NCBI GenBank assembly: GCA_965644265.1
Contig: OZ286473.1
Span: forward strand, 66,526,001 to 66,590,000
Source: Glycera tridactyla
Taxonomy: Eukaryota
DNA: 64,000 bases
Direction: 5' to 3'
The translations under genes were made by a program, and so were the position numbers. This document shows positions 5,601 through 61,076 of this stretch, piece after piece. Position 1 is the stretch's first letter. The number at the start of each line of letters is the position of its first letter. Under the pieces are notes generated by a model, which was not told the origin of the DNA, ran no database searches, and saw only the letters and a list, made by a program, of their open reading frames with translations.

Positions 5601-5974
5601 ATATCACTGATCGTCTCAGTCTGAAATGAGGCATTAGAATATACCAATATACCACCACCGCACGACTTTCCACTTTCTAGTGTAAGATCTTGTCTGTGTA
5701 ATTGGTAGTTGGGTATCTCTAGTTCTAAGTCACAAATACTATTGTTTAAGAATGTTTCGCTAAGCAGTAGGAAGTCTAACCTACTTTGATCAAGGAGTGT
5801 GCGAATTTCATCTATTTTTCTGGTGACGCTTTGAATGTTAAGAGAGCCAAAAGTTATGCCTGGCAGGTTCGACAACGACTCCGATGTGTAATCCAACATT
5901 GAAATAGGCGTACGAGTAGGAAATACATACGTATTATGCTGTCTGTTATTAGAACCATGAGATTGAGTTTCCAT
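2687..5974 (-). mobile_element. CR1/L2-group LINE, ORF2 (APE + RT) broken by stops and frameshifts; 3' end AATAAA followed by (CAA)n
   Basis: APE motifs (LNIQS, SETFL, GGGILVY, CVYRPP, DHVI, SDH) and RT motifs (LDLKKAFDTVDH, VPQ, LGPLLF, YADDT, YLG) in ORF pieces 4547-5974, 4278-4607, 3931-4290, 3025-3927; aaataaaacattttcaacaacaac on minus at 2687-2710. The 5' limit beyond 5974 is not determined. Confidence 0.9.
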
Positions 5975-8085
5975 GATAATTATCTTATCTTAAGTATGGA
6001 GGAGTATATCAAATACGGTGAAGAGACCATTAATAAGTGTCATTGAAATCGTGGGCAGGGAAGCCTATTCCAATCAATTTATAAATTTGACATGCCTGAT
6101 AACTTAAGCTAATATGATTACAAATATGGGCAGGATGATCAGAGAGCTAAGTGTGCTTAATGCCAGGTATTGTTGCCATCGGTTCCGATACCCGACATCT
6201 CACATCAAAATCTGAGTAAGCAGCTTATAACTGAGTATACGCTAGATAACAGTAAAAGTAATAGGAGCGCATACATAAACATACCATGCGTGTTGCCTCC
6301 GAAACCAGTATCAAATCAATCTAGTGGAACACCTCAGATGCTGTCTGACGCCAATATATCATCAAACATTGTATAACGGCTTTAACATAACTACATGAAC
6401 GCATTTCTAGCTAAATGGTAAATCAGTCCTCACACGCTATCAGACACACAAACACAAATTCTGAATTAACAAGATATAACAGAGGATATGCTAAATAGCC
6501 GTAAATGTAAGAGTAATGCATACATAGAGAAACCCTAGGTGATATGATTCCGAACTTTATAGGAATAGCACCCTCATCTAATGTGAAACTATATAGTCAG
6601 TCATCTTTGACCATGACATGCCATCTATTGGAGTACCTGGAGTAGTGCCAACCTCATCGGAGCGGATGATTCTAGTCGGAGTTTTCAAGTCGAGTAAAAG
6701 CACTGATGACTCTCCAAACTGAATATGTTTAGCACGAGAGGCCGTAGGTACTTCTCGATAAATGCAGCAAAGTATGGGGCTTTCTACTTTGACTACCACC
6801 AACTGGGGAAAACATAGTGTGATCAACATTCGGCCATTACGGGTATACTAGGCATATGGAAGCTGTGGCTGTATTTTTTAACCCCATGCTGACGTATCAG
6901 CAGTTATGCTAGCTATTGTGGTCGATGTGATTGTTTCGATGGTAATCACTCTCTTACACTTCTCTGAAAAAAAGAGGTGTTTCGAATTTGACAATGTACA
7001 TTGTGGTCATATCTAGGTGATCGATATCCCAAGCTGATCAATATCACACTCCTCACCATTTTTCATCATCAGATAGAAAGTACCTTTTTCAGCTACTGTT
7101 CGAAAGATTTACACTCTGAAAATACAGATCCCTATAATGTGACAGACATTAACTTATGGTCATAAAACCCCACATGACATCACGGATTATTCAAAGAGCA
7201 ATTTGCTCATGCTAATTTTCCGTGTAAATTGGCTGGTTATAAAGGCACTGTTATATCTCATCTCAGACATAAAGATGGCATTTCTGCGGACCAAAGCATG
7301 TCAATCAAAAGGACTTTATCATAATGAATTCAAAATGATGCATCTCATACTAGGGAGAGATAGTAAGAAGAGCCATGCATATGTCATATAGAGAGTATCT
7401 TCCTCGTCATGATCAACATTCTCCCAGCATATCGACGAAGTAGTCGAGTAAGAAATCCAGGAATAGCCGATCATGATGTGAGAGAAATTATCTCAATACC
7501 TCTCTAGCGCTATGTCTGGTAAAGACACTCTCCTAGATGTATCCATTTTCAGGAAATCATTGAAATGTCTCCTTGCTGGAAAGCTGGATAATATTGAAGT
7601 GTAATATGATTTTGATTCTTTTGTAAACGTGGGGATTGGATGGTAGTGATACTTGTGAAGTGATGCAATATAAAGGTTGTGATGGATGAACAAATGACAG
7701 AGATGGTCGCTCGCGTCGAATGAATGAATGAAATAGTTTTCTCAAGGCACTGTCTGTGGAAAGGAGAGGGAAATGCCTAAAAGACTTTTCTCAGCTGTGG
7801 TAAAGCTCTGAAACCTGATGTATAAGCAGACGTATCAAATTTGAACATTATCTTGCCCCGGAAAAGACCCGCGACACACCTAATCGCCTGTACTGGTCTC
7901 ATGTTCAATGGTCTATATCTCAGGGCGAGATATCCCAGTCAGCAGATACCAGGCAAAGCCCAGCTTGCTACAAGGGCAAAAGTCTATACAGAGGGATTAC
8001 CAGGGTCGCTTCTCTCAGATGGATGGTTACATGCAGTGGTTCTTCTCCCGAATGATAACCAACGAAGTGAGTTCCAGTCCAAGTC

Positions 8086-8697: not shown

Positions 8698-11305
8698 AAA
8701 AAGCTTCGACCTCGTAGCTCTGCATTCCAACAATTTCAAAACGTTCCAGCCATCCAGCCACAATTGCCGGCCATAACCAGTCACATATGTTAGGTCCGAT
8801 TCACGTAGAATGGTCCAGGTAAAAGTGATGATATAATATATGACCGGTTAATCAGGCAAGCTGCATCCGGATGTCAAACGTAATCTACGATCCTCAACTA
8901 GAGACAATAATTTCGCATACCAAATGTAAGGGAAAGACCATTGGCCTATTCACAACAACCGAAACAATTTCCGCACCAAATCCTCGAATTTGCGGAACCA
9001 ACAGAACCGCTCACTGTCACGATTCAGGGATAAAATAATCGAGGGTGCTTTCGTTCACGTCCGTGCCCCGAAAAATCCGTGAGCCGAGACCGTGATTTTT
9101 GTTCGCACCTCGTCTCGCTCAAGCCCATTTTGTTCGGCCGAATCGACTCCAGCCGATCGATTCCTCAAGCCGGACCGTGAGAACTTTCTCGCAAATATTC
9201 CCACGGTCGCATGGAGACAGTTCTTCTAGCTATCATTTCATTGCAAATACTCGTGAGAACTTTTCTCGCTTCGCTCCCACGGTCGCATGGGTAGTCTTCA
9301 CACGACTCATCCAGTCGACCGCCGGCCGCGCTACGGAATCGCTCTTAACATATACGTGAGTGCACCGTTGTAGGTTATGAAAGACAACTACATTCGCATG
9401 GTACCTCACGAACATTATCGTATTTCTCCTCGATTCCGCGGAAACTCACGGAAACAAAAAAACCGGGTCGAATGCTCACGCCATACGTCGGTTAAAGTTG
9501 AGATATACATCTCTACAGATGCTAGGCATCACTATCATGGCCAAAAGCATGTAAATCACATCTACAATCCGATCGGCTACTCGAAATTCATATCAATGAT
9601 ATAGAAACACGGTTACCAACTGATTGGCAGTCACATTGGACCGCGCATCCGGCGAAAGCTCCATTCAATCGCAATACCAATATCGACACACTGAAACCGA
9701 CCGATATTGTTACCAAACCATGGACCGGGTTTTATAAAGGATAGGTGACGAGCGCCCAGAAGACACCCAAGCAGAATCTATAGGAAACGATAACAGGTCT
9801 CATAAAAGACTCAAGAAAGAGAGAGACAGAAGAGCGATAGAAGCAGAAGTCATATAGGAAAGGGAAACAGAGATATAAGAAGCAATATCGGTACAATCAA
9901 TACATCCATTACCACTATCCAAACACCTCCATACCAGCGTCCCTCTATGACGCAATCCATTTGCAGTCCATTACATCAATCCAAGCAGGCACACCAATCA
10001 CAACCACAAACAGCCACCCCGATGCAACCAATTAATGCAACAGTGCAGCCATTTCCGATTGCATCATAGAAAGCCCACCAGGCCCAATGCAAAGACCACA
10101 ATCTCCAGCCACGTCGCCAACCGGTGAACGATTTACACGAGAAATATCCCTGTACATCGTCTCTTGCATGATTCCTCGTGCCAAGTCACATTTACACCTG
10201 CTAGTCATGTGGAATGTAATATGAAGGAAAAACTCCCTATACATCGTCTTTTTATCATGCCATCGCATGACTTCACATGATCATGCGCTAACCGCATGAC
10301 ATGTACAGAATTCAAAATATCTTTGATTATCGTCCGAAGCTATATATTATCATGACCATCAATTTGATTACAACGTCTTGCATGATCAGAGTGTTCATAG
10401 CTCATCAGCCTCCAGGCTGGGTTCTCAACACACGCGAACACAACGATATGAGCAGCGTTATACATCGTCCAAGGTATTCACTCACGATTCCCTGATTACT
10501 AGTCTTTTCTCAGTCTAATCTAGAGTGAATACCTTCGCTGCATCCCATAAGATATATGAAGATAATCCATTATCCACAGATGATATCAAGATACACACAC
10601 CGATACGTCCATTTGCCGAGCCCAGAGACAACCAGTGTTTCCGTCAGGCCACCATCCCTGGAACTCAAGCAAATGAACATATCAGTTAATAACTGTACAA
10701 ATATCGATCCACATCCCCATGAACAATTGCAATACGATTATCGTCAATATCTTTCACACAAAACTCCTGTTTGATTATCAAGGTGTGGTTAAACAGACAC
10801 TCACTGAATATCTACGAATATAACGATAAATATAATTCCATTATATATGATTATATACACATCCAGATAGTATTGAAGTCAAAGGAGAAGAACTACCCAC
10901 ACATTCACCGATACATACATCACACCACATTGCAACAATTATAGGGATTGAAAATACAGCCACGGACTCTTTGATTGATTAACAACCAGGACCATGTAGG
11001 TAGTCCCTTCATGTCCCCGAATAACCCATTTTCCAAGAGCCCTGACACCACGATATCCTGTCCAAATTATGAGATATTCATACACACCACATTTAAATCC
11101 CATAATTCTAACCAGGGACACGGTATGGTAAATAAAAACAGATTCACAGGTTGGTTAAGCCTGCTTTCATCCACCATCCCAGCAACTCACTACAATCATT
11201 TCGTGGAAAGATAAAATCAACAGAACGCTAACAAGGAATATTCCTGGATGCCACCCAACACTATCGAGAGACCACCTAGCCATTTAAATCACAGAATATG
11301 GGCAT

Positions 11306-24645: not shown

Positions 24646-25700
24646 TTAATCAAATACACAATCAGATATACGTCTTTCAAAGATCTGATGACTCTCCGCC
24701 TGCTTGATGTTTGTGCTCAAGCCATTATAGACTCGGGCACCCCTTACTGCAAGTCTGCGGTCTCCAGCTGTATTTTTCGAGCGTGGCACTTCCAATAGAT
24801 TGCCAGTTTGCTGTCGTGTGAAGGCATCAGCTTGATTTACTCTGACAGTAAACATTTCATTGAACGGTGGGGGAAGCAAATCAAGTGAGCCTTTATGAAC
24901 TGTGATGCACACATGTTTCTGCTGGCGAGATTCCAACATGTCAAGCTCTAGTTCCTGGTGCATTTCTCTGATGCTCCTCAGTGGGTCAGCTTGGAGGATG
25001 ATGCGGCAAGCTGCATTTTGTATCTTTTGCAATCTTAAAGTATCATTGACAGTGATTGTGTCATACGCGACATCACAGTAGTCCATCACCGGCAGCACAA
25101 GGGACTTATAAAGCATCAAAGAGGTATCTTGATTTATATATTTTCTTGCTCTGCCGATGATGGACAACTTGCGAGTGCACCCGCCAAACAGAATATTTAT
25201 GTGCTCACTGAAGCTCAAGGTTGGGTCCATCCAAATACCCAGGTACTTGTATCGAGGGACTCTCTCTAAAATACAGCTGTTCATAACCATGTTGATATTT
25301 TTGTAATAGCAAAGACTTTGGTTGCTACCAAAAACCATCCACTGGCTCTTCTTTGTATTTACCGTGAGTTTATTTTCGAACAACCAGGACTCTGCCTCAA
25401 TTATGCCTAGTTGTAGATTGAGCTCTAGTTCATCACTGTCATTGCTCATATAATACAATGCCGTGTCATCAGCATACATCCGTACACGGCAACTTGGTAC
25501 ACTCTCTGGTAAATCATTAATAAATATGACAAACAGTAGTGGACCCAATATTGATCCTTGGGGTACTCCGCAGGTGATTTCATTAGTGGAGGAAAAACAT
25601 GAGTGGACACGTGTCATTTGTGTTCTACCAGTAAAGTAGTTTCTGAACCATAGTAGTCCAGGTTCATCAACACCATATTTTTCAAGTTTGTATAAAAGAG
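24646..25700 (-). mobile_element. 5'-truncated CR1/L2-group LINE (RT C-terminal half, open frame)
   Basis: LYKLEKYGV...WFRNYF.GR.Q, GVPQGSILGPLLF, MYADDT, YKYLG, YCDVAY, LQKIQN. The 3' UTR extends towards ~24330. Confidence 0.9.
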
Positions 25701-26413
25701 TTTGGACAATCGGTCCTGGTGCTCTTCCAACATCTATGAAGACTGTTGTATTTCTCGACTACCGTATCTGCCATGTGCAGGCATGACGACTGTCATGACC
25801 TTGGTTCTCATGTTCACAGCAAAAAAAAATGTATCTCAGCGACGCACATTGTGCGCTACGTCACAACATCACCAGATACGTGATGCACTCAGTGTAGCAG
25901 GCCTGCCACTATATACTTACTGAATCATTATTGATTTATCGATTTATCTACCTGTTTACTACTGTTCTTGATAGATATCCGACAGTCCTCTTCATCTATC
26001 ATTTTGCTTGTGCCATGGGATCTCTTCCTATGTATACTCACAATTGCTCATATCTGTGTACCGTATCGTTTTGTCTTATATCTCCTGCATCTCATTCAAA
26101 CTGGTGCTACTTCATGAGTTAATTCAAATGTTTGCATGAGCACCTAATGATGGTACTACAGGGTGACGTGTTAAACTTTATCTCTGTATATATGTTGCAT
26201 CTCATGCTATGAAGTTATTTCTGATCCTGATTCTCATTTCTGAACTGGTGTAATGCATACATTTCTTTTGATTGATGAACCAGTCAGTAAATGATTATAC
26301 AAGGAGATCACATAGACATATTGTCACATTCGTCACAGAACAAGAATAGTGATATCATTGATGAAGCAAATATGATAGGAGAGCAAAATATTCAATCAGG
26401 AAATGTAACTTAC

Positions 26414-43468: not shown

Positions 43469-45037
43469 TTGACCTGACTAAGGCCTTTGACAAAGTTGAC
43501 CATGATATACTTCTCCCTAAATCATAATTCTTGGGTTTTCGGAATTCTGTTCCCTTATGGTTTGAATTATATTCAAAGAATAGGCACCAGGCAGTCAAAT
43601 GTACTGAGGTATTATCTGATTTTGCAAATGTTGAAATAGGGGTGCTTCAAGGCTTGATCCTTGGGCCACTCCGATTTGTCCTATCTAATAATGACCTCCC
43701 ATCTGGGATTAGGCATTCGAAAGTCTTCATGTATGCGGACAACACCGCTATCCTGATGAAATTTTGCAAAAATTAGTAGCGGATATGAGTGATTTAGAAG
43801 AATGGTTCGAAAGAAACAAATTGACACCTTATCACGAAAAGTCAAAATAATGTTTTTCGAAACTCGTCCAGAATTACGAAATCTGTCGAACCAACCCTCC
43901 CTACTAAGCTTTGATAGGGTGTCGACCTTTAGTTACTTAGAAATGAAGCTTGATTCACACTTAAACTTTGATTTACGTGTAGGTGCCATTGTAAGTACGC
44001 TCCGGAACTAGCTTCCTATTGAGAATCCGCTGTTTTATAGATAAGAACCTGGCTTTGTTTCTTGCTAAATCCCTTATTATCCCTCTGTTTGACCGTGGAG
44101 ATGTATTATTATTTGGTAGTGACAGTTGTTTCCTGAAGAAACAGGATGTTGCTTTTAATGATGTACTTTGTGCGTGTCTGTGTTGCAACAGGATAACTTC
44201 AACAAATTATCTACTAACGGAGGCGAATATGGTGGGCTTGATGGATACACGAAATTATCATGCGTTATGCACATTCAAGAAGATAAACATAGGTCTGTGC
44301 TCTGGTCGGTTGAATAAAACTTTTGTTGAAAAATTTGAAAATTCAAATGAGGAATCATGCCAGACTAGATCTGAATATGTGGATAGACACAGAATTCCGA
44401 AAACAAATCTGAAATCGACCGAAAAACACTTTTTCATGCAAATTATTAGAATCTGGAATGCCATCCCACTAGAGACATGATCATGTGGAAGTATTACAAC
44501 TTTCAAATCTCAATTGAAAAGGAAACTGAGTGCAAAACGCCATACTATGTACCTTTAATACTGTACAACATTCAGTATTGCTGCTTGTACTTCATGATTT
44601 TGTATTGATGGAATGATCTGCGGGATATGGCACTGCCTATAAGGAAGTGCATTTTTCTCAGCTTGATGGAAAGTATTAAGCTTGGGTTTTCTAGTGTCCA
44701 GGGACCACCACTTTGTGCTTGCCAGAACACTGCCGGGTTGCTCAGTGATTTTATTATTGAATTATGATATTTGCCACTTGGCGGTGAGCATGTCCTTAAA
44801 TTTTATTTAATCCTATCTATGCTGCCTGTATTTATTTTGTCAGAATGGTTTGATTTGATTTTATATCATGGACCATTTCTTATGCTTGGGTATTGGGGAC
44901 CTCTATTCAGTGCTTCCCTCTTGATTTTCTCTGACGTTTTGTCTGGTTTTGTTCTTTGTTGATCCATCGTCTTGCAGAACTATATTGTGTGTCTTGATAA
45001 TGAAGAGTAAAATACTTGCCTTCACTTAAATTCCCTA
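43469..45037 (+). mobile_element. Old CR1/L2-type LINE fragment (decayed RT plus start of 3' UTR); probably continues at 61355-61860
   Basis: DLTKAFDKVDH, GVLQGLILGPL, MYADNT, IWNAIP...FKSQLKRKL motifs with many stops. Confidence 0.8.
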
Positions 45038-46210: not shown

Positions 46211-48924
46211 ATGTCTTCCGAACAGAAAAAAAGAAGATTGTGGACACCTCATGTCATTGTGGGATGATCATAGAAATTGTCCAAATTGTAGACAATGTGG
46301 TAACTTGGAAGATGTTCAAAGATTTGGCCAAAAAGTTTGTAAAACCTGTTCAGTCTGGCCGTGGGAGAGTTGGGAGGCTCACTATAGGAGCAGGAGACAA
46401 TTTCTGAAACGCATAGTTCATTCCCCTGCTGTCCCGGAGGAAAACTCTAAAAGGAGTAAGACTATGGCCCAGATTGTAGAGAATACTTCTGTGTCTTCCA
46501 AGAAAACTGAGCCCCCGTCCCTGTCAAACACAATGTGAGTAAACACCCTGGTCCTAGTTCAGAGGGGCATGCTTCTGTAGACAGCCTTGCCAGTGTGGCA
46601 GAAGATTTAGCATCTAGGCCACATTTGCTACAGTCCATTCGCAGGAGGAAGGAACTTGCCAAGCAAAAGCTTTTGTCTAAAGCAGGGATTGATTCTGAGG
46701 AACTTAGAATGGCTTCCTCTTCTGCTATTGTCATGCCAGAGGTCACTTTGACACTTTTGAGGCCAGGCACTGGACTGTCATTTTTGGATGGTGTGCCTGG
46801 AGATACTCAAGAGAATCCAGCTTCCACATCAGTACAATTCCAGGATGATTTCTTCTGGCCAGAGCAGCCAGCTGTGGATGTAGTCAAACCTGTTAATATA
46901 GTTGAATCTTCAAATGCTGGGAAAGATTCCAATCGCAAGAAAACCAGTAGTACCAATGCAGGTAGTATTCTATCTAAGGCCAGTGGACATTCAGTTCATT
47001 CCGTTTATTCATCTCATGAATCTAAGCTTAATACTAGTGTGAGAGCAGTTTCTCGTAGAGGACGAGCTATTTCACCTGTCCGGGCTCCAAAGGATCCCAT
47101 GGGGACAGATTCGACCGAACCAGAACTCCGGTCAGTTCACGCTTTAAAGCGTTCAGGTTTTAGACCGGGGTGTGCTCAAGCGGTTCTAGCCAAAGCAGGG
47201 ATCCGCTTAGCGGCAGCACCCGCTAGGAGTCTGATTCGGACAAGATCCGGAGTTAGCGGACATGAGCTCATTCACTCTCAGAAGTTTCATGATAATGATA
47301 CCATTACAGTGATTAGATCGTGAGCGGCTGCGGCTGCACTCATTGCAACTTCTTCTCATCAAGCTCTAGCAGTCCAGGTTGAGATCTATAGGGAGGATGA
47401 GCCTCCGGTCCTTTTGAATGAGCCAGTCTCCGGCTCACCAGATTCTTGGAAATCTCTGCTGGATGAGTTATCTACTAGAAGAAAACAGATGGAGGAAAAC
47501 CTTCTTAGTCTACAGGACCTGATGTCCAAGGTGAAATCAGACATAGGATCCAGAGGAAATGATAATAGACTTCCTCCCATGCCACGACAGGATAGTCCTC
47601 CTCAGGTTCAGCCTCACGTACAGAGAAATATCCCTTGCACTGCATCAGCCCCAGGTAGAACTGCGTTTATGAGGGATCCACGAATCAGGTCTTTGTCACC
47701 AGTTGTGGTAGAAAGGGATAGATCAGAATTAGCTTCAGCAGCGAGATTTGAAGCAATGGCTGAGAGATTGCAGAATGTCGAGAATCAGTTGAAAAAGAAG
47801 GATGAGAATGCTCAAGCTGAAACTGATCCAGAATCAGACGAAGACACTGAGAAACCAGCTGTTAAAAGAAGGTTGAGAAATTTTAGAAAATTTGCGGCAG
47901 AGATGTTGCCTGCCGATATTCCTCAGCCAGATGTTCATCATGAGGCAGTACCTGGTGTATCTCAAAAACATCTGAATACTTCTTATGAGCAGGAAAGGAA
48001 GTCTAATGAAACAGATTGTTTGACCAAATCATCTCTTCCTTTGTCATCCTTACTGATTACGACTCAAGAGAGTCTAGACAGAGCCCTTCGAGGCAAGGAG
48101 AAGGGTCAGGTACTTCAACCAGTTGACACTCCTTTGAAAGAGTTCAAAGTAGGCAGATTAGGCTTGCAGGAAGGGAGTGCAAAGTACTTTAGGATATCCA
48201 TGCCAAAATCTACAGGTTGTAACCCAAAGTCCTACAGAGTGAGACAGACAGGAGATAGATCCAGGAGGCATTTGGTTGAGCCCCCGTTAATTGATTCGGA
48301 TTATTCTCAATATGGTAAACTGTCTAAATCCGAGCTAAAACCGTCTAATGACAAACTCATTCTTAGACAATCTCTAAAAACTCTCAGCTACGCAGATTTT
48401 GCGTTGGCTGCGGGTCTGTGTGCCGGGGAACTCTCAGAAGCTGAGTCTCTTAATATTAAGAATAAAGCTCGGGAAGCCACTCGTGTAGGACTCAAAGCAG
48501 TTGAACATACAGCACAACTTGTCTTGAAAGTCGTCGGCAACATAGAGCTGACCAGACGCACTCAAGCTTTACGTTCAACTGACTTTGACGAGGACACTGA
48601 GTTACAATTGAGGTCTTTACCTATGGGCAATGAAGAACTCTTTGGAGGCAGACTCTTTGATGCTTCAGAACAATCCTCGGAGAAATGTCGCAGGAAGCGA
48701 GAAATGTCTTTTGATTCTCACCTTCGTGGGACCTATAAATCATACCCAAATAGAGGTTCAGGTAGAGGTGGAGGATTTGTGGGCAAGTCTAGAGGTGGCA
48801 ATAACCAGAAGAGTAGAGGCTAGGGCTTCAGAGGTAGGGGGTCGAGGTAGAGGTGCTCCAGCATCAGGCCAGACAAAGAAAGACTTCAATGAGAATCAGT
48901 CCTCTAACTTTGATCAGGATGTAA
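46211..48924 (+). pseudogene. DIRS ORF1 (gag-like), frameshifted; C-terminus resumes at 57479-57528 after the LINE insertion
   Basis: N-terminal CGH.M...D.H..C..C..C...C..C..W motif; conserved N.EL.RR....LP....LFG block; RG-rich tail completed as ...FDQDV|KPKFPKSRGRGRKRQP* when the LINE is removed. Confidence 0.8.
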
Positions 48925-48989: not shown

Positions 48990-50879
48990 ATGTCGTCTAA
49001 ACCTTTAACAGCGCCTCCGAACCAACCATACATTACTGATTACACTTCTAAGGATACTTCGGATTCAAAATTAGATGCCGAGGCTAAACTTAAGGCCTTG
49101 ATCGCGGATACTAAAATCCAAGCAAACGGTAATGTTGTTACTGACACTGTAACCATGGACGCTACTGCGACCGTGACCGAGACTGCACCCGCTAACAATA
49201 ACAAACCTCCAGATCTTTCCGACATAACCGCTGACAGCGCTCTTGCAAGCACACCAGGTGGGAAGTCTAAACGCAACCGTGATCACTTCTCCCCTCCGGG
49301 TGATGTTCCCCTTGATAAAAAACAGGTAATCGAAATACCGGTTTCCGTGAGACATTCTAATTTGCAATTAAACTCAGAAGCCCTGCCTTGTGAGACCATT
49401 GAACCTCCGAGCAGTGACCAATTGCAGCTGGCTCAATGCAGTGTTATCGTCTCTGACGAGACTAGCCTTGCTAATATGACCAACGGAGATCAAGATGATC
49501 ACGGCATTGACCTGCATATGCAGTCGCCTTTTAATGAAGCTGGTGTGTCTGATGACCCGGTTGTCAACTCGATCAATGAAAACAAATTACCCTTTAACTA
49601 CGCTGACCTGAAAAACCAGTTAATGTGCGAAATCAAATCTGAGTTGAATCAAACGATCAAAAAAGAGCTCAGTACTACTATCAACAACTGTGTTGATGAT
49701 CTCATTCTCCTTATAAATAATCTCGAGTCTAGAGTAACAGCAACAGCGAGTGCTCTTAATAATCATATCGGAAAATCTAGTCTTAATACTGACTCTGGGG
49801 ACATTTCTCCTCCTCCCACTGACCTAAAATCACTGATCAATGAACTGAGTGTAACCAAACTCGAACTCAATAAGGCAGTTGGACGACTGGAAAACCTGGA
49901 GCTGAGTGATAGAACAAATGTCATTCTCGTTGATGGATTTAAACCGACTGATGACCGTCCTATAACAGATGCTATTCTATCCGAGTTGAATCAAAGACTT
50001 GGTACTTCTCTCTCCAGATCTGACATTCTGCACTGCCATTTCTTTGGCCCTCTCTCAGATGACCCATCTAAATCAACCACCATACGAATCAAGTTCCACT
50101 CAGCAATGACCAAAAGGAGCATCCTTAAGTTAAAAGGCAAACTTAGGGATACTCCCATCTTTCTAAAAGAACATTTGACAGTAAATAATAGCCGTATTTT
50201 CTATAACTCACGAGAAGCACGCAAATATGGTATTATTGACCATACGTGGACGGATAATGGCAAAGTATGGGTCACGACATCCACTGATGACCCCCCAAAA
50301 CTGATTAAGGACTCTAGTGAGCTAATTAGCACTGTCGAGGAGGCCAAACAGAGAGGCGTTCAACCGCGAACGGATTTTCCGCCTCGCCAACCACGACATA
50401 ATCGACATGATCAGAACTACACTAAGACACCACTACCACGCAATAATAGCCGAATTTCACAATATGTTGGTACTCGCCGTCGGGCACAATTCAACTATGA
50501 CACTGATTTCCCTGTACAAACGCACTACAGCCAACAACCTAACTTTAATGCGTCAATAGACAACACCCCGATCCAGTCGCGTCTTGCCGGAATTGCCTAT
50601 GGCATGAACGGCTGGAATGCAGGCCCACCGCCTAACACCCTCTCGTACGATAACAACCAGTATAACATGCAACGCCACTCGCAAATGCAGTCATTCATGC
50701 CGACAGATACAAGCACACGACCACCGCTACCACCGCCGATACCGTACACCCGTCCGTCGCACGACGGTTTCCAACGGCCACCGCCACATTTGTCTGTGCC
50801 CTCTTTCCGAGCACAAGTCCCTTCGTACCCTGCGACTAGCAATCGTTTTTTTCCGCTTCAAAATTGGAATCAGAATTAA
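48990..50879 (+). CDS. LINE ORF1p, L1-type (coiled coil + RRM + CTD) with low-complexity N- and C-terminal extensions, 629 aa, intact
   Basis: Heptads LKSLINELSVTKLELNKAVGRLENLE, RRM start NVILVDG, IRIKF...K..IL, IFLKEHLT, WT.NGKVWV. Confidence 0.85.
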   Translation: MSSKPLTAPPNQPYITDYTSKDTSDSKLDAEAKLKALIADTKIQANGNVVTDTVTMDATATVTETAPANNNKPPDLSDITADSALASTPGGKSKRNRDHFSPPGDVPLDKKQVIEIPVSVRHSNLQLNSEALPCETIEPPSSDQLQLAQCSVIVSDETSLANMTNGDQDDHGIDLHMQSPFNEAGVSDDPVVNSINENKLPFNYADLKNQLMCEIKSELNQTIKKELSTTINNCVDDLILLINNLESRVTATASALNNHIGKSSLNTDSGDISPPPTDLKSLINELSVTKLELNKAVGRLENLELSDRTNVILVDGFKPTDDRPITDAILSELNQRLGTSLSRSDILHCHFFGPLSDDPSKSTTIRIKFHSAMTKRSILKLKGKLRDTPIFLKEHLTVNNSRIFYNSREARKYGIIDHTWTDNGKVWVTTSTDDPPKLIKDSSELISTVEEAKQRGVQPRTDFPPRQPRHNRHDQNYTKTPLPRNNSRISQYVGTRRRAQFNYDTDFPVQTHYSQQPNFNASIDNTPIQSRLAGIAYGMNGWNAGPPPNTLSYDNNQYNMQRHSQMQSFMPTDTSTRPPLPPPIPYTRPSHDGFQRPPPHLSVPSFRAQVPSYPATSNRFFPLQNWNQN

Positions 50880-50938: not shown

Positions 50939-51829
50939 GTGCCTATATATTTAAATGTCGAAAACCCGAGATACAGTGAACCACTCGAGGTGAGTGATCT
51001 TCAACTGCGAAATGCGTGGAGCACTCTCCACCCACCTATGTTCGCTGACAAGATGTACACGGTAGCATATTGGCTACGGAGGTACGGCCCTCCCAGACTC
51101 GTCTTTTTTGGCAGCAGCCATGCTATGCACTTTGCCACATTTCAAAATGCACCCTCTGCACCATTGTCACTGAAGCAAGTGTTTAGCGCTTCCAAGTTTG
51201 TGACTGTTGGTGGTCTGAAATGGTCGTCAGCTACCGACCAGCTTAACGGCCTTTTTAGTGACCCCATTAAACTGGCTCGCTATGGCAACCAATGGGCCAA
51301 CTATTACAATTCAGCGCACTCAATAACTCCTAACTATGTGCCCCACTATGCTGTCATTTGCTTGGGCTCAAATGATCTCGATGATTTTGACGCTATGTGT
51401 AGAAGCCTAGCAAATGACCACAGCGTGCTTGAGCTGTCCACCCGCCGTGCAATTCTGTCCAATAATTGGTTTAATCAATTGACGGCCCTTATTCGTCAGG
51501 TAATACCAGGGTTTCGCGTCCATCTCCCGAGATGCCCTTTGGCCTATATCCCTATCTTGGAGAGATCGTGGTGGCTACCGGAAACTAGACAGCTATGCAG
51601 CTACTACAACTACTATATAACTCGCACCCTCGAAACCGAGACAGGTCTGAAAGTTAAGGCTATCGACACGTCACCATTATATATGATCCATAAAAACACC
51701 AAGATCATAAACCCGGCGCTGATGCAGGATGATAATATCCACCTAAATTGGTGGGGCTTTGAGTTGCTTGCAAGACAAATTGCCACCCCACTGCAGCAAT
51801 TCATAGCCAATATTTACGGTCCGCAGTGA
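50939..51829 (+). CDS. Free-standing SGNH/GDSL esterase ORF (first ATG at 51038, 263 aa)
   Basis: Block I FFGSSH, block II VGG, block III LGSND, block V DNIH; Ser-Asp-His triad intact; different frame from ORF1. Confidence 0.85.
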   Translation: MPIYLNVENPRYSEPLEVSDLQLRNAWSTLHPPMFADKMYTVAYWLRRYGPPRLVFFGSSHAMHFATFQNAPSAPLSLKQVFSASKFVTVGGLKWSSATDQLNGLFSDPIKLARYGNQWANYYNSAHSITPNYVPHYAVICLGSNDLDDFDAMCRSLANDHSVLELSTRRAILSNNWFNQLTALIRQVIPGFRVHLPRCPLAYIPILERSWWLPETRQLCSYYNYYITRTLETETGLKVKAIDTSPLYMIHKNTKIINPALMQDDNIHLNWWGFELLARQIATPLQQFIANIYGPQ

Positions 51830-52640
51830 ATTGTCATACTACAGCCGAACATTGTTTGAATGCGCGTATCGAATATTGTCTTGCTAGGATATGCCGTCTT
51901 GATCGCCTCAGACCTTGCACTGGGTTCGTAGTGACCCATAACAGCCGTAGCGCCATCTGGATATTGCTGTCACTCAAAGACGCATTCTTGCATCGCGAAT
52001 TATACAAACCATGCACTGGATCCGTATTGTACACAAACAGCCGCTATGCAATCTGGCTGGTGCCCCAACGCACATGTACTTATGAATGAATGTACTTGGT
52101 GTGTGAGCGTGCGCACACGTATTGATGATTAATTGTACATGGTGTGTGTGTGTGTGTTTGTGGGAATGTTAGCGATTTGTGAATCTTACATGAGAGGGTG
52201 TTTGTAGGCATGTGAGTGTAGTTGAGTGCAAGCTGGTGAGTCTATACGATCATCCTTTCTGTGCTAGAAGTGACTGTGTGCGCGTTTTTGGTGTGAAGGT
52301 GCATGAGTATGTTTGCATTATTGTATGTGCTTATGTGTGAATGCGTGCTCAAGTGTAGTTATCTAATTCCGTGTGTGTTTCCTTTTCTCTTTGTTTTTTC
52401 TTTTTTTCATTACCCACAAGGTTTGTTGCACTGTATCGCTGTTCTTGCAAAAAGAGATGTAACTCTGTGTGTACATACATGTGTAGTTTCTGAGCGTTTA
52501 TGATGTCATGCACCCATGGTTGACTATCACACTCACTCGAGCCAATGTGTCTTGTTTCTCTTCAATTGGTACCCAAAGTCAGGTGACCTCGTTATTGATT
52601 TGTCCTCTGTACATGTTCACTGTCGCTCGACCAACTCCGT

Positions 52641-54190
52641 GTGTGGCAAAACCCTAATTGGGCACCACCCTTTCCATCACCACCATACTATTTTGATCTT
52701 GTGCTTGTACATAGATTTGCTATTGTTCCTTTATGTTCTACTATGCCTCATTATCTGTTTTATGCTAATATCCATCTACGATATTTGACAATCTGCCTTG
52801 AGTCATGCTTGTATTGTGCACCTGAAATATTTCTCCAACTCCCCCTACTTGGTAAAGTATACTGTTACCGCTTATAGTTAAACCAGCTCAAGGATTGTCC
52901 CCTGGACCTGCTGTTTATTGCTCAACCTGCCTCACGTGTGGTACAACCCTAATTGGGCACCACCGCCTCTATCACCACCTTAAATCTCGATGTTCTGTAT
53001 TCTCTCCAATTTGTCTTTGTCCTTTTATGTTCGACCTTGCCTCATGACTGACACAAGTTGCCATAGGCGCCACCTATCGTATCCTGCAGGCAGAACCCTA
53101 ATTGGGCACCTGTTGCGATCAAGATGCTAGACTGTTACAACCTGCCTTGGGTCTGACCCTTATTGGGCACCCAATGACTTCTCCTACTTGGTAAGTTGCA
53201 TTGTTGCCGTTCACAGATGAACCTGCTTAAAAAGCCGTGCCTCCTATCGCATCCACCGCATAACACCATCTATTGACCAGACCTCTGGACTATGCCGCGG
53301 ATGCGTCCGGCCGTATCCTGCGGGCTTGACCCTTTGTCACGCTCGACCACATCGACTCCATATCAACATCTACTGGCCTTGCAGTGTTTCTTTTTCTTTT
53401 CGAATACTACCATGAACTTTGCAATAAGCACCACCAACTGTAAGCAAAACCCCAATTGTGCACCTGCTGTTAACAGGATAACTGCAACTGGAAGTTTAAC
53501 CTGCAACACTAAGTTGCAGATACTCTCTTCATTTTTCCTTTTCTGTTAGCCCTCAGGCACAACCCTAATTGGGCACCTGTGGTCATCCTGCTGATACATA
53601 TATCTCTGTTATAAATGGTTCTATGTTACACCTGACAATGTCATAACTGCCATCTATCTTAGCAAACAGGGACAACCCTAATTGGGCACCTGTGGTTAAC
53701 TTATTGACAATGCTAATGACTACAATCTGCAATTGCCTCTATTGTGTTATTTTTTTTTTCTTTTTTCTGCATTTATTTCTCTTATTGTTCACAGGTACGA
53801 CCCTAATTGGGCACCTGGTGGCCTCTGTGTCTATAATGATGCCTCTTAGTATAGCAATAATCTCTATATATCATCTAATATTGTGATCATCTTCTCGTGA
53901 ACCGGCTGGTACTTAACTGTTGTTTTTCTCACGATGATCTCCCATAATTTGTCTCTAATTCACTCTATTACATGCTGTCTCACTATTTGCTATTTTTCTG
54001 CCAGTAGCCTGATTTATCGAAAATTATAGTGTGGCATAACCCTAATTGGGCACCATATTCTTTGAGTGTTTCTTTACTACGCTCTCTTTTCCATCTACTT
54101 GACTGCAACTGCTCATTGAGGATGAAACAATATGACTCATTCTGTTCCTGGCTATGGATTGGTTAGAATAACCCTTATTGGGCACTACTC
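52641..54190 (+). repeat. Array of ten ~25-30 nt hairpin motifs, core RACCCTAATTGGGCACC, with variable spacers
   Basis: Cores at 52650, 52945, 53094, 53155, 53448, 53561, 53674, 53799, 54038, 54170. Confidence 0.92.
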
Positions 54191-54361
54191 ACTCCTGTCG
54201 GGACCAGAAATTATTTCTTACTTAGCTCCACCAATATCCTTGAACCACAGTTACTGTGTACTGTGTATCTAATCCCCTAATCTTCAATATTATGACCTGT
54301 GCAGTTCTCCTAGACACAGACCCAAGCATTTCCTACTCACCCAGGGACCCACCCCCTAATT

Positions 54362-57281
54362 ATGGTTGAGTTTCCAACACAAACTCCTCTTTCCAAAATT
54401 GATTACACAATTTACTCCCTCTCTAAATTAAATGGCGTGGCGTTTGGTGCATATAATATTCGCAGACTTGTACCCAAACTAGATTCCATCAAGATACTGC
54501 TGGATAAAACAAAGCTAGATATACTTGTCCTGACCGAAACATTTTTAAACAGCTCGATCAATGACAGTGAGCTTATAGTTGATGGCTTTAACCTTTATCG
54601 CCAGGACCAGAATAAGGATTCATGTAAAAAATCAGGCGGAGGGATTATTGCCTATGTACGTAAGGCATACTCTGTTAGTCTAGAAGACTCTGCCTGTTCT
54701 CTGAACAAAGACTTAGAGTCTATGTGGCTTACTTTGCGTTTACCGAGAACAAAGCCGATTTTAATTGGTGCTTGCTATCAGCCACCTGATGGCAGTCTGG
54801 TAAATGCAACTGAAATGCTGACCACGTCCATCAATCACCTTCTAACAAATAAAAATGAAGAAATAATCTGCCTCGGGGATCTGAATATTGATACATCCAA
54901 CCCCTCGCAAGACACCCAAAACATACCGTGACTTCCTAATACTTGAGAAGCTGTCCCAAATCATCAAACAGCCAACTAGAGTTACTAAATCTTCTTCCAC
55001 TACAATCGACCATTTCTGTACCAACAACGCTGATCTTTACCAACGCTGTGGTACAATTGATCCTGGCCTGAGTGATCACAGTCTCATCTTTGCCTGTAGG
55101 AAATACCTAAAACTACCCAAACTCAAAGTAACTATAACTATCCGTTCTCGCCGCCACTTCGATATAGATAACTTTAAACAGGACATGATCAACTCTGACT
55201 GGAGCTCTGTCATCGATACAACTGACCCCAACTTAGTAACTCCAAGGTTCAATAGTATTATGCTCCGATTAATTGACAAGCATCTGCCGCTCATTAGTAT
55301 TAGGGTGAGAAGCAACAGTGTCCCATGGGTAACGAAGGAATACCTCAGTTATACTGACCGACGGAAATACCTCTCACGGCTTTATAAAAAGAACCCCACT
55401 GATGAATTGCTTGAAATGAAGAAAAATGCAATTCGAGAATGTAATAGACTCAAGCGTCGACTGAAAACTGATTATATCAATTGTAAATTAGAAGAACATA
55501 AGAGTGACGACAAAAAACTATGGGAAGAGTTACGGCACATTCTACCAGACTCTAACAATAACTCAGGCAGTACTATTGAAGAAATCAATGGCATCCCTGG
55601 CGATCTGAAAATTGCGAATGAATTAAACCAACACTTCTGTAGTACGGCTAAAACCCTCGTTGACAGAATCCCTGCAGAGACTAATCCCTCTCTGACGCCG
55701 TGTTTGCCACCCATATTTGACCTAAAGCCAGCCTCTATCAAGGATATCCAGGATGGAATTAGCCAACTTTCGAACTCGAAATCGAGTAGCAATGACAGTA
55801 TTACTTCTGAACTTTTAAAATCATGTAATGAAATTATTAGCCCGGTCATCTTGCATCTAGTTAATTCAAGTATTATTAGCAAAACTTTTCCATCTGTCTG
55901 GAAAGTTGCTAATGTAAGGCCTCTTTTTAAATCAGGTAAAACAAATCTTGCAACAAACTACCGTCCAATCTCTATCTTGCCTACCGTTAGCAAGATTCTG
56001 GAGCGAATTGTCCATACTCAAACATATAATTATATGACCGTAAATAACCTGCTGACAGACGCCCAGGCGGAGTTCAGGAAGGGACACTCAACAGGCACCT
56101 GTCTAATGGCCTTTCTTGATGAGATATATCATGCCATCGAGCGGGGTGAATTAAGTGGAGTGCTCTTCCTGGACCTCTCCAAGGCATTTGATACTGTCGA
56201 CCATATTTTACTGATTCAGAAATTAAGGAACATGGGCTGCAAAGCGAGTACATTATCATGGTTCAAATCATACTTATCTGAACGCACTCAGAAGACCATT
56301 GTCAATATCTCCTCCTCGACCACCCTGAACATTGATTACGGAGTACCACAAGGCTCTATTTTAGGCCCCCTTCTCTTTACGATTTATGTAAACGATATCA
56401 CTGAGCATGTACTTTCTAGTAAGACATTCCTTTATGCAGACGACACTGCCATATTATATTCCGCAAAGGACCCGGGGGAAATTTTGGCCAATCTGTCACT
56501 AGACTTAGTAGCTCTACAGAAATGGTTCAACTCAAACAAACTGACGCTTAATATCAACAAGTGTAAACTTATGTTTTTCGGAAGTCGGTCGAAATTGGGA
56601 CAGTCGACTGACTTAAACCTGCATTTTAATGACACGATAATTGAACGTCCCACCTCCTTTAAGTACTTAGGTCTGACTTTAGACCCGTCTCTATCCTTTA
56701 CCGAACATGTCTCAAATGTGGTTCATAGCGTGTCTTATAAAACTGGGATGTTGTGGAGGTTGCGCCCATACATCAACAAGGATGTTGCTTTAAAACTTTT
56801 TAAAGTGTTGATTAACCCACTCTTTTGCTATGTCGATTTCATATATGACGCCACATCAGTGACGAATAAAAAGAGACTCCAAATTGCCCAGAACAAGGCC
56901 CTCAAATGTGTGCTCAATGTGGGACGTCGGACTCCAAGTGTCTACATTCACAAAACAACAAGGATAATGTATTTACAGAAGCAGAGAGACCTCCGTTCGA
57001 TGATTGAAATACATAAAATCATGACCGGCCATTGTCCTCCCATGATATCAGACAGAATTAAGCAAAAAAATCCCTCTAGGGTCCACACTAGACAGTCTGA
57101 AAAATGCTTGATTGAAATCCCGAAGATCAAGTATGAATTAAGTCGCGGTAACATTTTCCTTAGGGGCAGTATATTGTGGAATAAGCTCGACTCTGATCTT
57201 AAGGACATAGAAAATGCTCAATCATTAAGAAGTGAACTAAAAATCCAGGCCCTTGAGAACCTTTCCGGCTTGCCTGATTAG
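54362..57281 (+). CDS. LINE ORF2 (APE endonuclease + reverse transcriptase), single frameshift near 54900-54930
   Basis: YNIR, TETFL, GGGIIAY, GDLNID, DHF, SDH; LDLSKAFDTVDH, GVPQGSILGPLLF, YADDT, YLG. Confidence 0.93.
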
Positions 57282-57505
57282 ATTGCATGAACCATTCTAA
57301 TTCATGCTGAATCATATTGTCTCATCTCCTCCTCTTTTGTATTTTTTTTTGTACATATATGTCCTGTAAATACTGTATATACTGTTATATGTTCTCGCAA
57401 GCCCTGAGTTCATCTGGCTTTCAGATACGGGGCTTGTTTTTTTGAGAGTAAAATAAAGTATTAAAAAAAAAAATGTAAAACCTAAGTTCCCTAAGTCTAG
57501 GGGGC

Positions 57506-60496: not shown

Positions 60497-61038
60497 ACTC
60501 CAGTCTTGAATACTCGGGTACTAGCCGAGAGGCAAGGAGTTTGCATGGTATCTCTATAATTGTGTTGTTTTCTGTATAGGCTCTAGGTCTCGAATAGGGT
60601 ATTAGCCGAGAGACACGGAGCAATCAATAGGTTTTTTATTTCAAATAATGTACATTTCAATAGGCTCTATGCCTTGAAGACTCGGATATTAGCCAAGAGA
60701 CACGGAGCAATCAACATATGCTCTCAATGATTGATAATTATTTGTGTTGTATATATCTATAGGCTCTATGTCTTGAAGACTCGGGTATTAGCCGAGAGAC
60801 ACGGAGCATGCAGCATATGTTTTTGAAATTGATTCATGATTATTCATATTGTACATATCAATAGGCTCTAGGTCCTTAAATACTCGGGTATTAGCCGAGA
60901 GACACAGAGCATTATCAAACACTGAGATTGAAATGTATATAGCTGTTTATAGCAATAGGCTCTAGGTCTTGAATACTCGGGGTAATGAATTTTTTTTTCA
61001 CCTGTGATTCAGATATAGGTACCCGAGAGACACGGAGC
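60497..61038 (+). repeat. Six-copy structured repeat in the DIRS 3' non-coding region
   Basis: Core GCTCTAGGTCTTGAATACTCGGGTATTAGCCGAGAGACACGGAGC at 60497, 60580, 60664, 60763, 60865, 60959. Confidence 0.9.
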
Positions 61039-61076
61039 ATCCAGAGGGCTCTACACCCTCCATCCATGTCATATTC

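Follow-up and report, generated by a model that had tools for sequence, protein, structure and literature searches.

A covarying hairpin array upstream of ORF2 in a Glycera tridactyla LINE and its counterparts in related LINE families

Organization of the LINE

A 64,000-nt stretch of the Glycera tridactyla genome (assembly GCA_965644265.1, contig OZ286473.1, positions 66,526,001 to 66,590,000, forward strand; hereafter the window, whose own numbering is used throughout) contains a long interspersed nuclear element (LINE) that carries ten copies of a short hairpin motif in the spacer upstream of its open reading frame 2 (ORF2). The array is an integral, selected part of this three-ORF element, which is ordered ORF1, a free-standing esterase ORF, a long spacer and ORF2. 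A first-pass annotation, made from the sequence alone, had called the array a selected multivalent RNA element just upstream of ORF2; selection and location are supported by covariation of the hairpin stems, by conservation of a core motif and by arrays at the same position in three related LINE families.

All parts of the element lie on the + strand. ORF1 (48990–50879), taken from the list of ORFs, encodes a 629-amino-acid protein that is probably an RNA-binding ORF1p of the L1/FP25K type. It has no Pfam match; a language-model comparison points to LINE ORF1-like clusters (Baculo_FP, Transposase_22; scores 0.87–0.91), which serve as a lead only, and its C-terminal part aligns to ORF1 of a related element, L001. 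The second ORF (50939–51829; 296 amino acids) encodes a free-standing esterase of the SGNH/GDSL type, assigned through weak Pfam matches to SGNH and Lipase_GDSL_2 that fall below the curated cut-offs. This protein is homologous to the N-terminal 300 amino acids of a 783-amino-acid ORF in L001, and to the ORFs directly upstream of the spacers in two further relatives, L004 and L006; a word-indexed protein search returned no homologs.

From the esterase stop to the ORF2 start codon runs a spacer of 2.5 kb (51830–54361), T/C-rich overall (58% pyrimidine) and 60% pyrimidine within the array. Its first 800 bp include TG-rich repeats plus a (GT)n run, and the whole contains 52 ATGs, which makes ribosome scanning across it implausible. 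ORF2 (54362–57281) encodes an APE endonuclease and a reverse transcriptase, with one frameshift between these two parts at approximately 54892–54918. It is followed by a 190-nt 3' untranslated region (UTR; 57282–57474) that has an AATAAA signal, an A-tail and a GC-rich hairpin with no resemblance to the array motif. Since ORF1 and the esterase ORF are intact and ORF2 is frameshifted once, we regard this LINE as a young copy that is not intact. A scan for bacterial-type promoters and terminators gave background levels and is irrelevant to a eukaryote. Directly 5' of the LINE lie two long ORFs of 262 and 469 amino acids (46535–48823) lacking Pfam matches, which may represent the 5' part of the LINE or another element.

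The hairpin array and its surroundings

The array is defined by a 16-nt core, AACCCTAATTGGGCAC, with ten matches at two or fewer mismatches, all on the + strand and all within 52650–54185. Dinucleotide-preserving shuffles of the window gave a mean of 0.34 matches and a maximum of 2, and none of 100 shuffles reached ten. Successive cores start 295, 149, 61, 293, 113, 113, 125, 239 and 132 nt apart. Each unit comprises an outer stem strand, a 5-nt strand of the form N-A-N-R-A, CCC, a loop of TAATT or TTATT, GGG, CA and the second outer stem strand.

The outer stem, of 4–5 bp, varies between copies, and the bases of the loop and of the A-rich internal loop stay constant. Copies 1 (52642–52669) and 2 (52937–52964) carry GTGG/CCAC and have minimum free energy (MFE) values of -7.5 and -9.1 kcal/mol, copy 1 adopting the expected shape. 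Copy 3 (53086–53113; -8.6 kcal/mol) carries GCAGG/CCTGT, and copy 4 (53147–53174; -10.7 kcal/mol) carries TTGGG/CCCAA around the loop TTATT. Copy 5 (53440–53467) is degenerate, with a broken inner stem and a different fold of -1.9 kcal/mol. CAGG/CCTG is found in copy 6 (53553–53580; -7.3 kcal/mol) and copy 8 (53791–53818; -10.6 kcal/mol), and ACAGG/CCTGT in copy 7 (53666–53693; -9.3 kcal/mol). Copy 9 (54030–54057; -6.4 kcal/mol) carries TGTGG/CCATA, which includes one G-U pair, and copy 10 (54162–54189; -4.1 kcal/mol) carries TAG/CTA, its MFE fold being limited to the inner stem. Two decayed copies on the same strand are recognizable through their flanks: one at 52788–52822, which has lost CCC and GGG and is homologous to copy 4 plus flank (74% to 53137–53171), and one at 53312–53345, homologous to copy 3 plus its 5' flank (82% to 53078–53099). 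A motif search also located two half-motifs on the + strand downstream of copy 10: CCCTAAT without a 3' partner at 54275–54281, and CCCTAATT at 54354–54364, which is continuous with the ORF2 ATG (CCCTAATTATG). Across the + strand of the window, nine of the twelve CCCTAAT sites fall in 52652–54354.

Anchored on the core, the copies have a mean pairwise identity of 93% within it. Identity drops to 38–40% in the 8–12 nt on either side, which are the stem positions, and beyond the stems to 27–30%, the random level at this base composition. The spacers between units measure 25–259 nt; alignment z-scores of 5 or more were obtained for only 2 of 36 spacer pairs, and residual homology is confined to spacer 1, which matches spacers 2 and 4. 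A short element is therefore strongly constrained while the surrounding sequence drifts. The similarity of 52516–52535 to the start of ORF2 is at chance level for an 8-nt seed. These results agree with the first-pass annotation on ten core copies spaced 61–295 nt apart, on the unit anatomy and listed outer stems with copy 5 degenerate, and on a motif far better conserved than its surroundings.

Tandem Repeats Finder reported no array in 52641–54190, so this is not a regular tandem repeat. A regular tandem repeat, a satellite and an L1-type monomer array were each considered as identities for the array and rejected: the period is irregular and the spacers are not homologous along their length. 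The monomer arrays in the 5' UTR of mouse L1 do resemble it in being repeated units within a LINE, in one orientation, with a copy number that changes over time. However, those monomers are regular head-to-tail promoter DNA of approximately 200 bp, whereas here the period ranges from 61 to 295, only 16–28 nt are conserved and the stems covary.

Copies 1 and 2 lie within a higher-order repeat of approximately 295 bp, at homologous positions of which occur the donor-like sites GGTAAG (~53190) and GGTAAA (~52851), both listed in the first-pass annotation and both present. Together with the sequence context of some copies, these sites raise the possibility that host machinery reads the hairpins as signals for RNA processing or transport: regulated 3' splice sites concealed in the stems could, with the GGTAAG donors, yield a spliced ORF2 mRNA, or the hairpins could be elements of export, localization or stability. 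The I-factor and other insect LINEs carry localization stem-loops. In copies 3, 6, 7 and 8 a pyrimidine tract precedes the hairpin and the stem contains CAG|G, and the two donor-like sites are conserved within the array. Thus the acceptor context on which the first-pass annotation based a splicing switch is present in the CAGG subfamily, that is, in four of ten copies; it is absent from copies 1, 2, 4, 9 and 10 and has no clear counterpart in related elements. The hairpins of the three related families described below lack a consistent splice-site context, and the motif differs between families within one host. We consider host processing or transport an improbable explanation of the array.

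Covariation of the outer helix

The ten units were aligned over 37 columns and pairing was counted over 80 cells. Without any structural hint, RNAalifold recovered a 5-bp outer helix, an internal loop of 5 nt by 2 nt, the CCC/GGG inner helix and a 5-nt loop. Standard pairs occupy 91.3% of the cells, and both-side (compensatory) changes occur in four of the five outer-helix pairs. Column pair 7–30 is A-U in five copies, U-A in four and G-C in one; column pair 6–31 is C-G in four, G-C in two and U-A in one, with two wobbles besides. None of 500 column shuffles reached either the observed pairing percentage or the observed covariation score, and sliding the 3' partners by 1–3 columns reduced pairing to 22–56%. 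The flanking helices covary, as the first-pass annotation had claimed in stating that the outer stem changes yet stays paired, and compensatory pairs are found both in the window, where they go beyond the shuffled and slid controls, and in the related family that includes L002. The inner helix is invariant and thus uninformative for or against structure. When units are folded in isolation, both helices appear in the MFE fold of eight of ten copies, copy 10 forming the inner helix only and copy 5 neither.

Arrays in related LINE families

Homologs of ORF2 number in the thousands, the nearest being 39–45% identical, and the DNA around ten of them was examined. Arrays occur at the same position, upstream of ORF2, in three other families whose ORF2 proteins are 40–43% identical to that of the window LINE. 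The first family (L001/L002/L003) is represented in two NCBI assemblies and one ENA metagenome, and has 8 hairpin copies; the second (L004), from the same assembly as L001, has 3; and the third (L019), from an ENA metagenome, has 4. The ORF2 proteins of the window LINE, L001 and L004 are roughly equidistant (42–45%).

The L001/L002/L003 family shares the order of the window LINE, with ORF1, an esterase-containing ORF, a spacer of 1.1 kb and ORF2. Its 26-nt unit differs from the window hairpin and reads GCC, GA, TTC, loop AATCCA, GAA, GA, GGC. All 48 cells of its alignment are paired, five of six pairs show compensatory change, and RNAalifold recovers the structure unaided. The inner stem occurs as TTC/GAA, TCC/GGA, GTC/GAC and TCT/AGA, the outer stem as GCC/GGC, GCT/AGC and ACC/GGT, and the internal loop shows G-A/A-C co-variation by eye. 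Because L001 and L002 are 99.7% identical and have intact ORFs, this array-bearing family has been recently active.

Two further features of this family may be recorded. The esterase ORF of L001 (3423–5774) encodes 783 amino acids, of which a C-terminal extension of approximately 480 matches nothing in Pfam and is absent from the window; the window spacer is longer to a corresponding degree. Each hairpin of L001 and L002 (L002 5625–6295) is trailed by a conserved single-stranded YTTAG (alignment columns 29–33) in which T31 and G33 are invariant; unlike this family, the window family has no conserved tail after its hairpins.

The L004 unit, CTGGCAACCCTGATGGCACGCCG, lies 840–1250 nt upstream of ORF2. 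One of its inner-stem pairs varies between copies, from C-G to U-A in a manual register and from C-G to U-G in the RNAalifold register. The L019 unit is a two-helix hairpin reading CAGC, TC, GTT, CCC, AAC, CT, GCTG. More distant relatives have an esterase or PHD ORF within about 100–160 nt of ORF2. An array is thus a feature of certain long-spacer families within a single subclade, without being universal.

The covariance models built from the window and L002 motifs match only their own arrays and no other site in the elements, which confines the motifs to the spacer. The two models detect neither each other nor the L004 motif. A local-alignment test of the likeness between the window and L004 motifs (AACCCT.AT.GG.CAC) gave p ~0.03, and a common origin of these two is possible on this sequence likeness. 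An AAYCC element common to all four families was also considered and left unproven, its structural position being different in each. In metagenome contigs a two-core pattern had no match. A 17-mer had six single matches, which lacked array or LINE context and were judged to be chance.

Arrays of different sequence at one position bear on the possibility that the motif acts as duplex DNA. A cluster of factor-binding sites, with the TAATT homeodomain core or, on the other strand, telomere-like TTAGGGTT as the site, could provide an internal promoter or enhancer for an ORF2-only transcript, much as mouse L1 monomers do, and would solve the expression of ORF2 across a long spacer. The strongest conservation is indeed a contiguous 16-bp block, half-motifs without a pairing partner are also kept, and pairing does not tell the strand. 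Yet conservation is not limited to a duplex site: the flanking positions covary as pairs, and a duplex site gives no reason for complementary changes outside the block. The homeodomain and telomeric Myb readings of the first-pass annotation leave this covariation unexplained. Moreover, the related families have fully compensated stems of different sequence, neither TAATT nor telomere-like AACCCTAA is shared with L001, all copies are in one orientation and the array is not a regular tandem. We therefore give a DNA-level role little probability.

Other repeats were seen in the course of the survey. The window contains further LINE ORF2 copies or fragments, belonging to related families, at 3025–5974 (-), 24673–25743 (-) and 43471–44519 (+), which are 32–47% identical to L001 ORF2. 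The 5.5 kb upstream of the near-complete copy at 3025–5974 contains no multi-copy hairpin array, only a 250-bp duplication (6206–6541). An exact 16-nt repeat, TCCCACGGTCGCATGG, occurs at 9199–9214 and 9275–9290, 76 nt apart, upstream (- strand) of the second LINE copy. In L014 (1–7000), the called genes that precede a more distant LINE ORF2 are short and repeat every ~1.96 and 3.66 kb, a pattern suggestive of a large tandem repeat. A DIRS-like neighbor of the window LINE (60503–61044) has six units of ~43 nt at spacings of 81–128 nt, each with a CTCGG(GTATTAG)CCGAG hairpin; unlike those of the LINE array, these units are alignable including their spacers, and they look like an ordinary tandem repeat.

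Comparison with known RNA families and elements

Rfam 15 gave no match at the gathering threshold over the whole window, a scan that covered hammerhead, hepatitis delta virus (HDV) and twister ribozymes, the iron-responsive element (IRE), SECIS, the histone stem-loop, viral and cellular internal ribosome entry sites (IRESs) and others. With E-values of up to 10 admitted, the region 52000–54500 yielded a single long non-coding RNA match of 14 bits against a gathering score of 70. This agrees with the first-pass annotation, which had seen in the motif no fit to the hammerhead, HDV, IRE, SECIS or histone stem-loop consensus. Our literature searches turned up no account of a hairpin array between the ORFs of a LINE, and nothing relevant on stem-loops of esterase LINEs, on ORF1p packaging signals or on the literal motif. 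The array is genuine and seems to represent a kind of LINE cis-element array that has not been described before.

The 3' UTR stem-loops of UnaL2 and ZfL2, which are recognized by the reverse transcriptase of their own element, offer one comparison. Like the array motifs, these stem-loops of stringent-type LINEs are family-specific, have a conserved loop and reside in LINE RNA; unlike the array, which is internal and has at least ten copies, they are single and located at the 3' end. An identity of the array as a 3' UTR stem-loop for reverse transcriptase recognition was rejected, given its internal location and the presence in the window LINE and L001 of 3' hairpins of their own that are unrelated to it in sequence. 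The covariance models of the arrays did not match these 3' UTR hairpins. Background on the recognition of LINE 3' stem-loops is available in PMC5135761.

Weighing the function of the array

We tentatively favor, at somewhat less than an even chance, the reading that the hairpins serve as multiple binding sites for an element-encoded protein, probably ORF1p, and that they possibly also control the translation of ORF2. Constant loops, covarying stems and many irregularly spaced copies are the design of known protein-binding hairpins such as the MS2 and PP7 operators, boxB and the IRE, and the array likewise combines loop bases common to its stem-loops with stems that vary. Folding in the sense RNA, binding by a protein and the choice of that protein are all inferred. 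An element-encoded partner is favored over a host factor because the L001 and L004 motifs differ within one assembly. ORF1p is the obvious candidate, as it is a probable RNA-binding protein encoded just upstream, which sites located downstream would capture in cis.

Several observations weigh against this reading. The single hairpins are weak: their energies span -4 to -11 kcal/mol, and relative to shuffles their z-scores are -0.2 to -2.2. Within ±100 nt of context the outer helix reaches a pair probability of 0.5 or more in only four of ten copies, individual values spanning 0 to 0.98; neither the z-scores nor the in-context probabilities give support by themselves. Because the copies are related by duplication, the number of independent compensatory events is small, at least three or four. 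L005, L006, L007, L016, L017 and L018 have no array in the 570–1400 nt of available upstream sequence, L006 having a complete spacer of only 507 bp that is free of it, and in view of these six related families the clade can do without the array. The window, L004 and L019 motifs resemble each other (AACC(C)T..GG..CAC), which may point to a shared host factor. Lastly, the reverse complement of the window array forms a 9-bp structure with a 3-nt bulge in which 93.3% of cells are paired, and for the window family the alifold energy is -10.75 kcal/mol in antisense versus -7.92 kcal/mol in sense.

Some of these points could also be read as signs of a decaying repeat without function, whose palindromic core has been kept by chance or gene conversion. 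Two copies are clearly decayed and copy 5 is broken, the z-scores of the single hairpins are not significant and several relatives have no array. Against this, a core at 93% identity next to saturated flanks cannot be neutral, and covariation is replicated in independent families. A self-cleaving ribozyme, suggested by the first-pass annotation, finds no support either: the unit is a two-helix hairpin of 28 nt, too small for known self-cleaving folds, and it matches no ribozyme family. Taken as a pair, absence of function and self-cleavage appear very improbable.

As the reverse complement pairs equally well, the pairing pattern alone does not identify the strand that folds, and what stands of the claim of an RNA element is the structured element; its assignment to the sense strand holds on context and not on pairing, given the 93% pairing of the reverse complement over 9 pairs. 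Folding might instead occur in an antisense transcript or in the first-strand complementary DNA (cDNA) of target-primed reverse transcription, with a role in cDNA handling or antisense regulation. Besides its pairing and its better alifold energy, the antisense structure of the window family includes an invariant extra G-U pair. On the other side, the window array has four wobble cells that exist on the sense strand only. The L002 family also favors sense: its units are 100% paired, two U-G pairs would be A-C mismatches on the other strand, the alifold energy is -7.87 in sense versus -6.81 in antisense, and the internal loops are purine-rich (GA/GA) on the sense strand only. The sense strand is slightly favored in the L002 family, and an antisense role seems to us quite improbable.

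A different sense-strand function would be an IRES-like platform, in which hairpins and pyrimidine-rich spacers recruit the 40S subunit or initiation factors, followed by scanning of a short AUG-poor stretch to ORF2. Within the elements, arrays are found only upstream of ORF2, and the 52 spacer ATGs speak against reinitiation from the esterase stop as much as against scanning. Half-motifs extend to the start codon, and the window array is pyrimidine-rich. A single ATG occurs in the 176 nt that separate the last hairpin from the ORF2 ATG, where ~3.5 would be expected, and in L001 the 223 nt before ORF2 contain none, against a similar expectation (~3.5). Multimerized short modules, such as the 9-nt Gtx element described by Chappell et al. 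in 2000, can reportedly work as synthetic IRESs, and a modular design dependent on copy number is conceivable for the array. To our knowledge the inter-ORF region of mouse L1 is not a hairpin array and no covariation has been reported for it. In position, between the first cistron or cistrons and ORF2, and in the problem of ORF2 translation that it addresses, the mouse L1 inter-ORF IRES resembles the array (PMC3592465; PMC3894237). According to a review, how ORF2 is initiated across long non-LTR intergenic regions lacks an explanation, and IRESs could reside in such regions (PMC3894237). However, unlike the mouse L1 IRES and Gtx modules, the array motif differs between families in one host: L001 and L004 share a genome, and with it the ribosome and host factors. 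In addition, the L004 array does not adjoin ORF2, the L001 spacer is not pyrimidine-rich and the AUG depletion is statistically weak. We regard an IRES-like function as rather unlikely, if still worth serious consideration as the main rival of the binding-site reading. Among the four roles proposed in the first-pass annotation, it and protein loading or packaging are the two that stay in play.

The sole ATG between the last hairpin and ORF2 opens a 25-codon upstream ORF (54292–54369, +), whose TGA overlaps the ORF2 start (ATGGTTGA). The overlap recalls termination-reinitiation and could also be chance.

If the hairpins are binding sites for a protein of the element, they would act as such in the sense LINE transcript, repeated along the spacer. 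The candidate partner would be the RNA-binding ORF1p, with the esterase protein or ORF2p less likely. Products translated from the upstream cistrons would be caught by the RNA encoding them, seeding a ribonucleoprotein (RNP) in cis. As the last motif copy adjoins the ORF2 AUG, occupancy of the hairpins might also gate ORF2 translation in the manner of a phage coat protein on its operator.

The closest parallels are the MS2 TR operator, PP7 and the packaging signals of single-stranded RNA phages and viruses. These, like the array, are many short stem-loops at irregular spacing with constant loop or bulge bases and variable stems, and they too are family-specific, in phages to the family that encodes the binding protein. 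The MS2 operator overlaps the replicase start codon, and here the last motif copy adjoins the AUG of ORF2. The two differ in that the array resides in a eukaryotic non-LTR retrotransposon, its copies sit together in a single spacer instead of being scattered genome-wide, and it has no sequence or Rfam relation to the phage and virus signals. By this analogy the array could be an operator array of a LINE subclade, in which family-specific hairpins bound by ORF1p seed an RNP in cis and throttle ORF2 translation at the start-codon copy; we put this fuller proposal forward as an unlikely one.

Implications for LINE biology

How ORF2 is translated from a polycistronic RNA and how LINE proteins find the RNA that encodes them (cis-preference) are open questions, and outside a few model elements no defined RNA element exists for either. 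For genome annotators, the array represents a new class of cis-element to be sought in LINEs with long inter-ORF spacers. The existence of several families, each with its own motif at a fixed position, makes specificity swaps and compensatory-mutant designs readily available. MS2-like logic has not been described for eukaryotic retrotransposons; were the operator proposal true, the hairpins would explain in physical terms both cis-preference and how LINE families competing within one genome are told apart.

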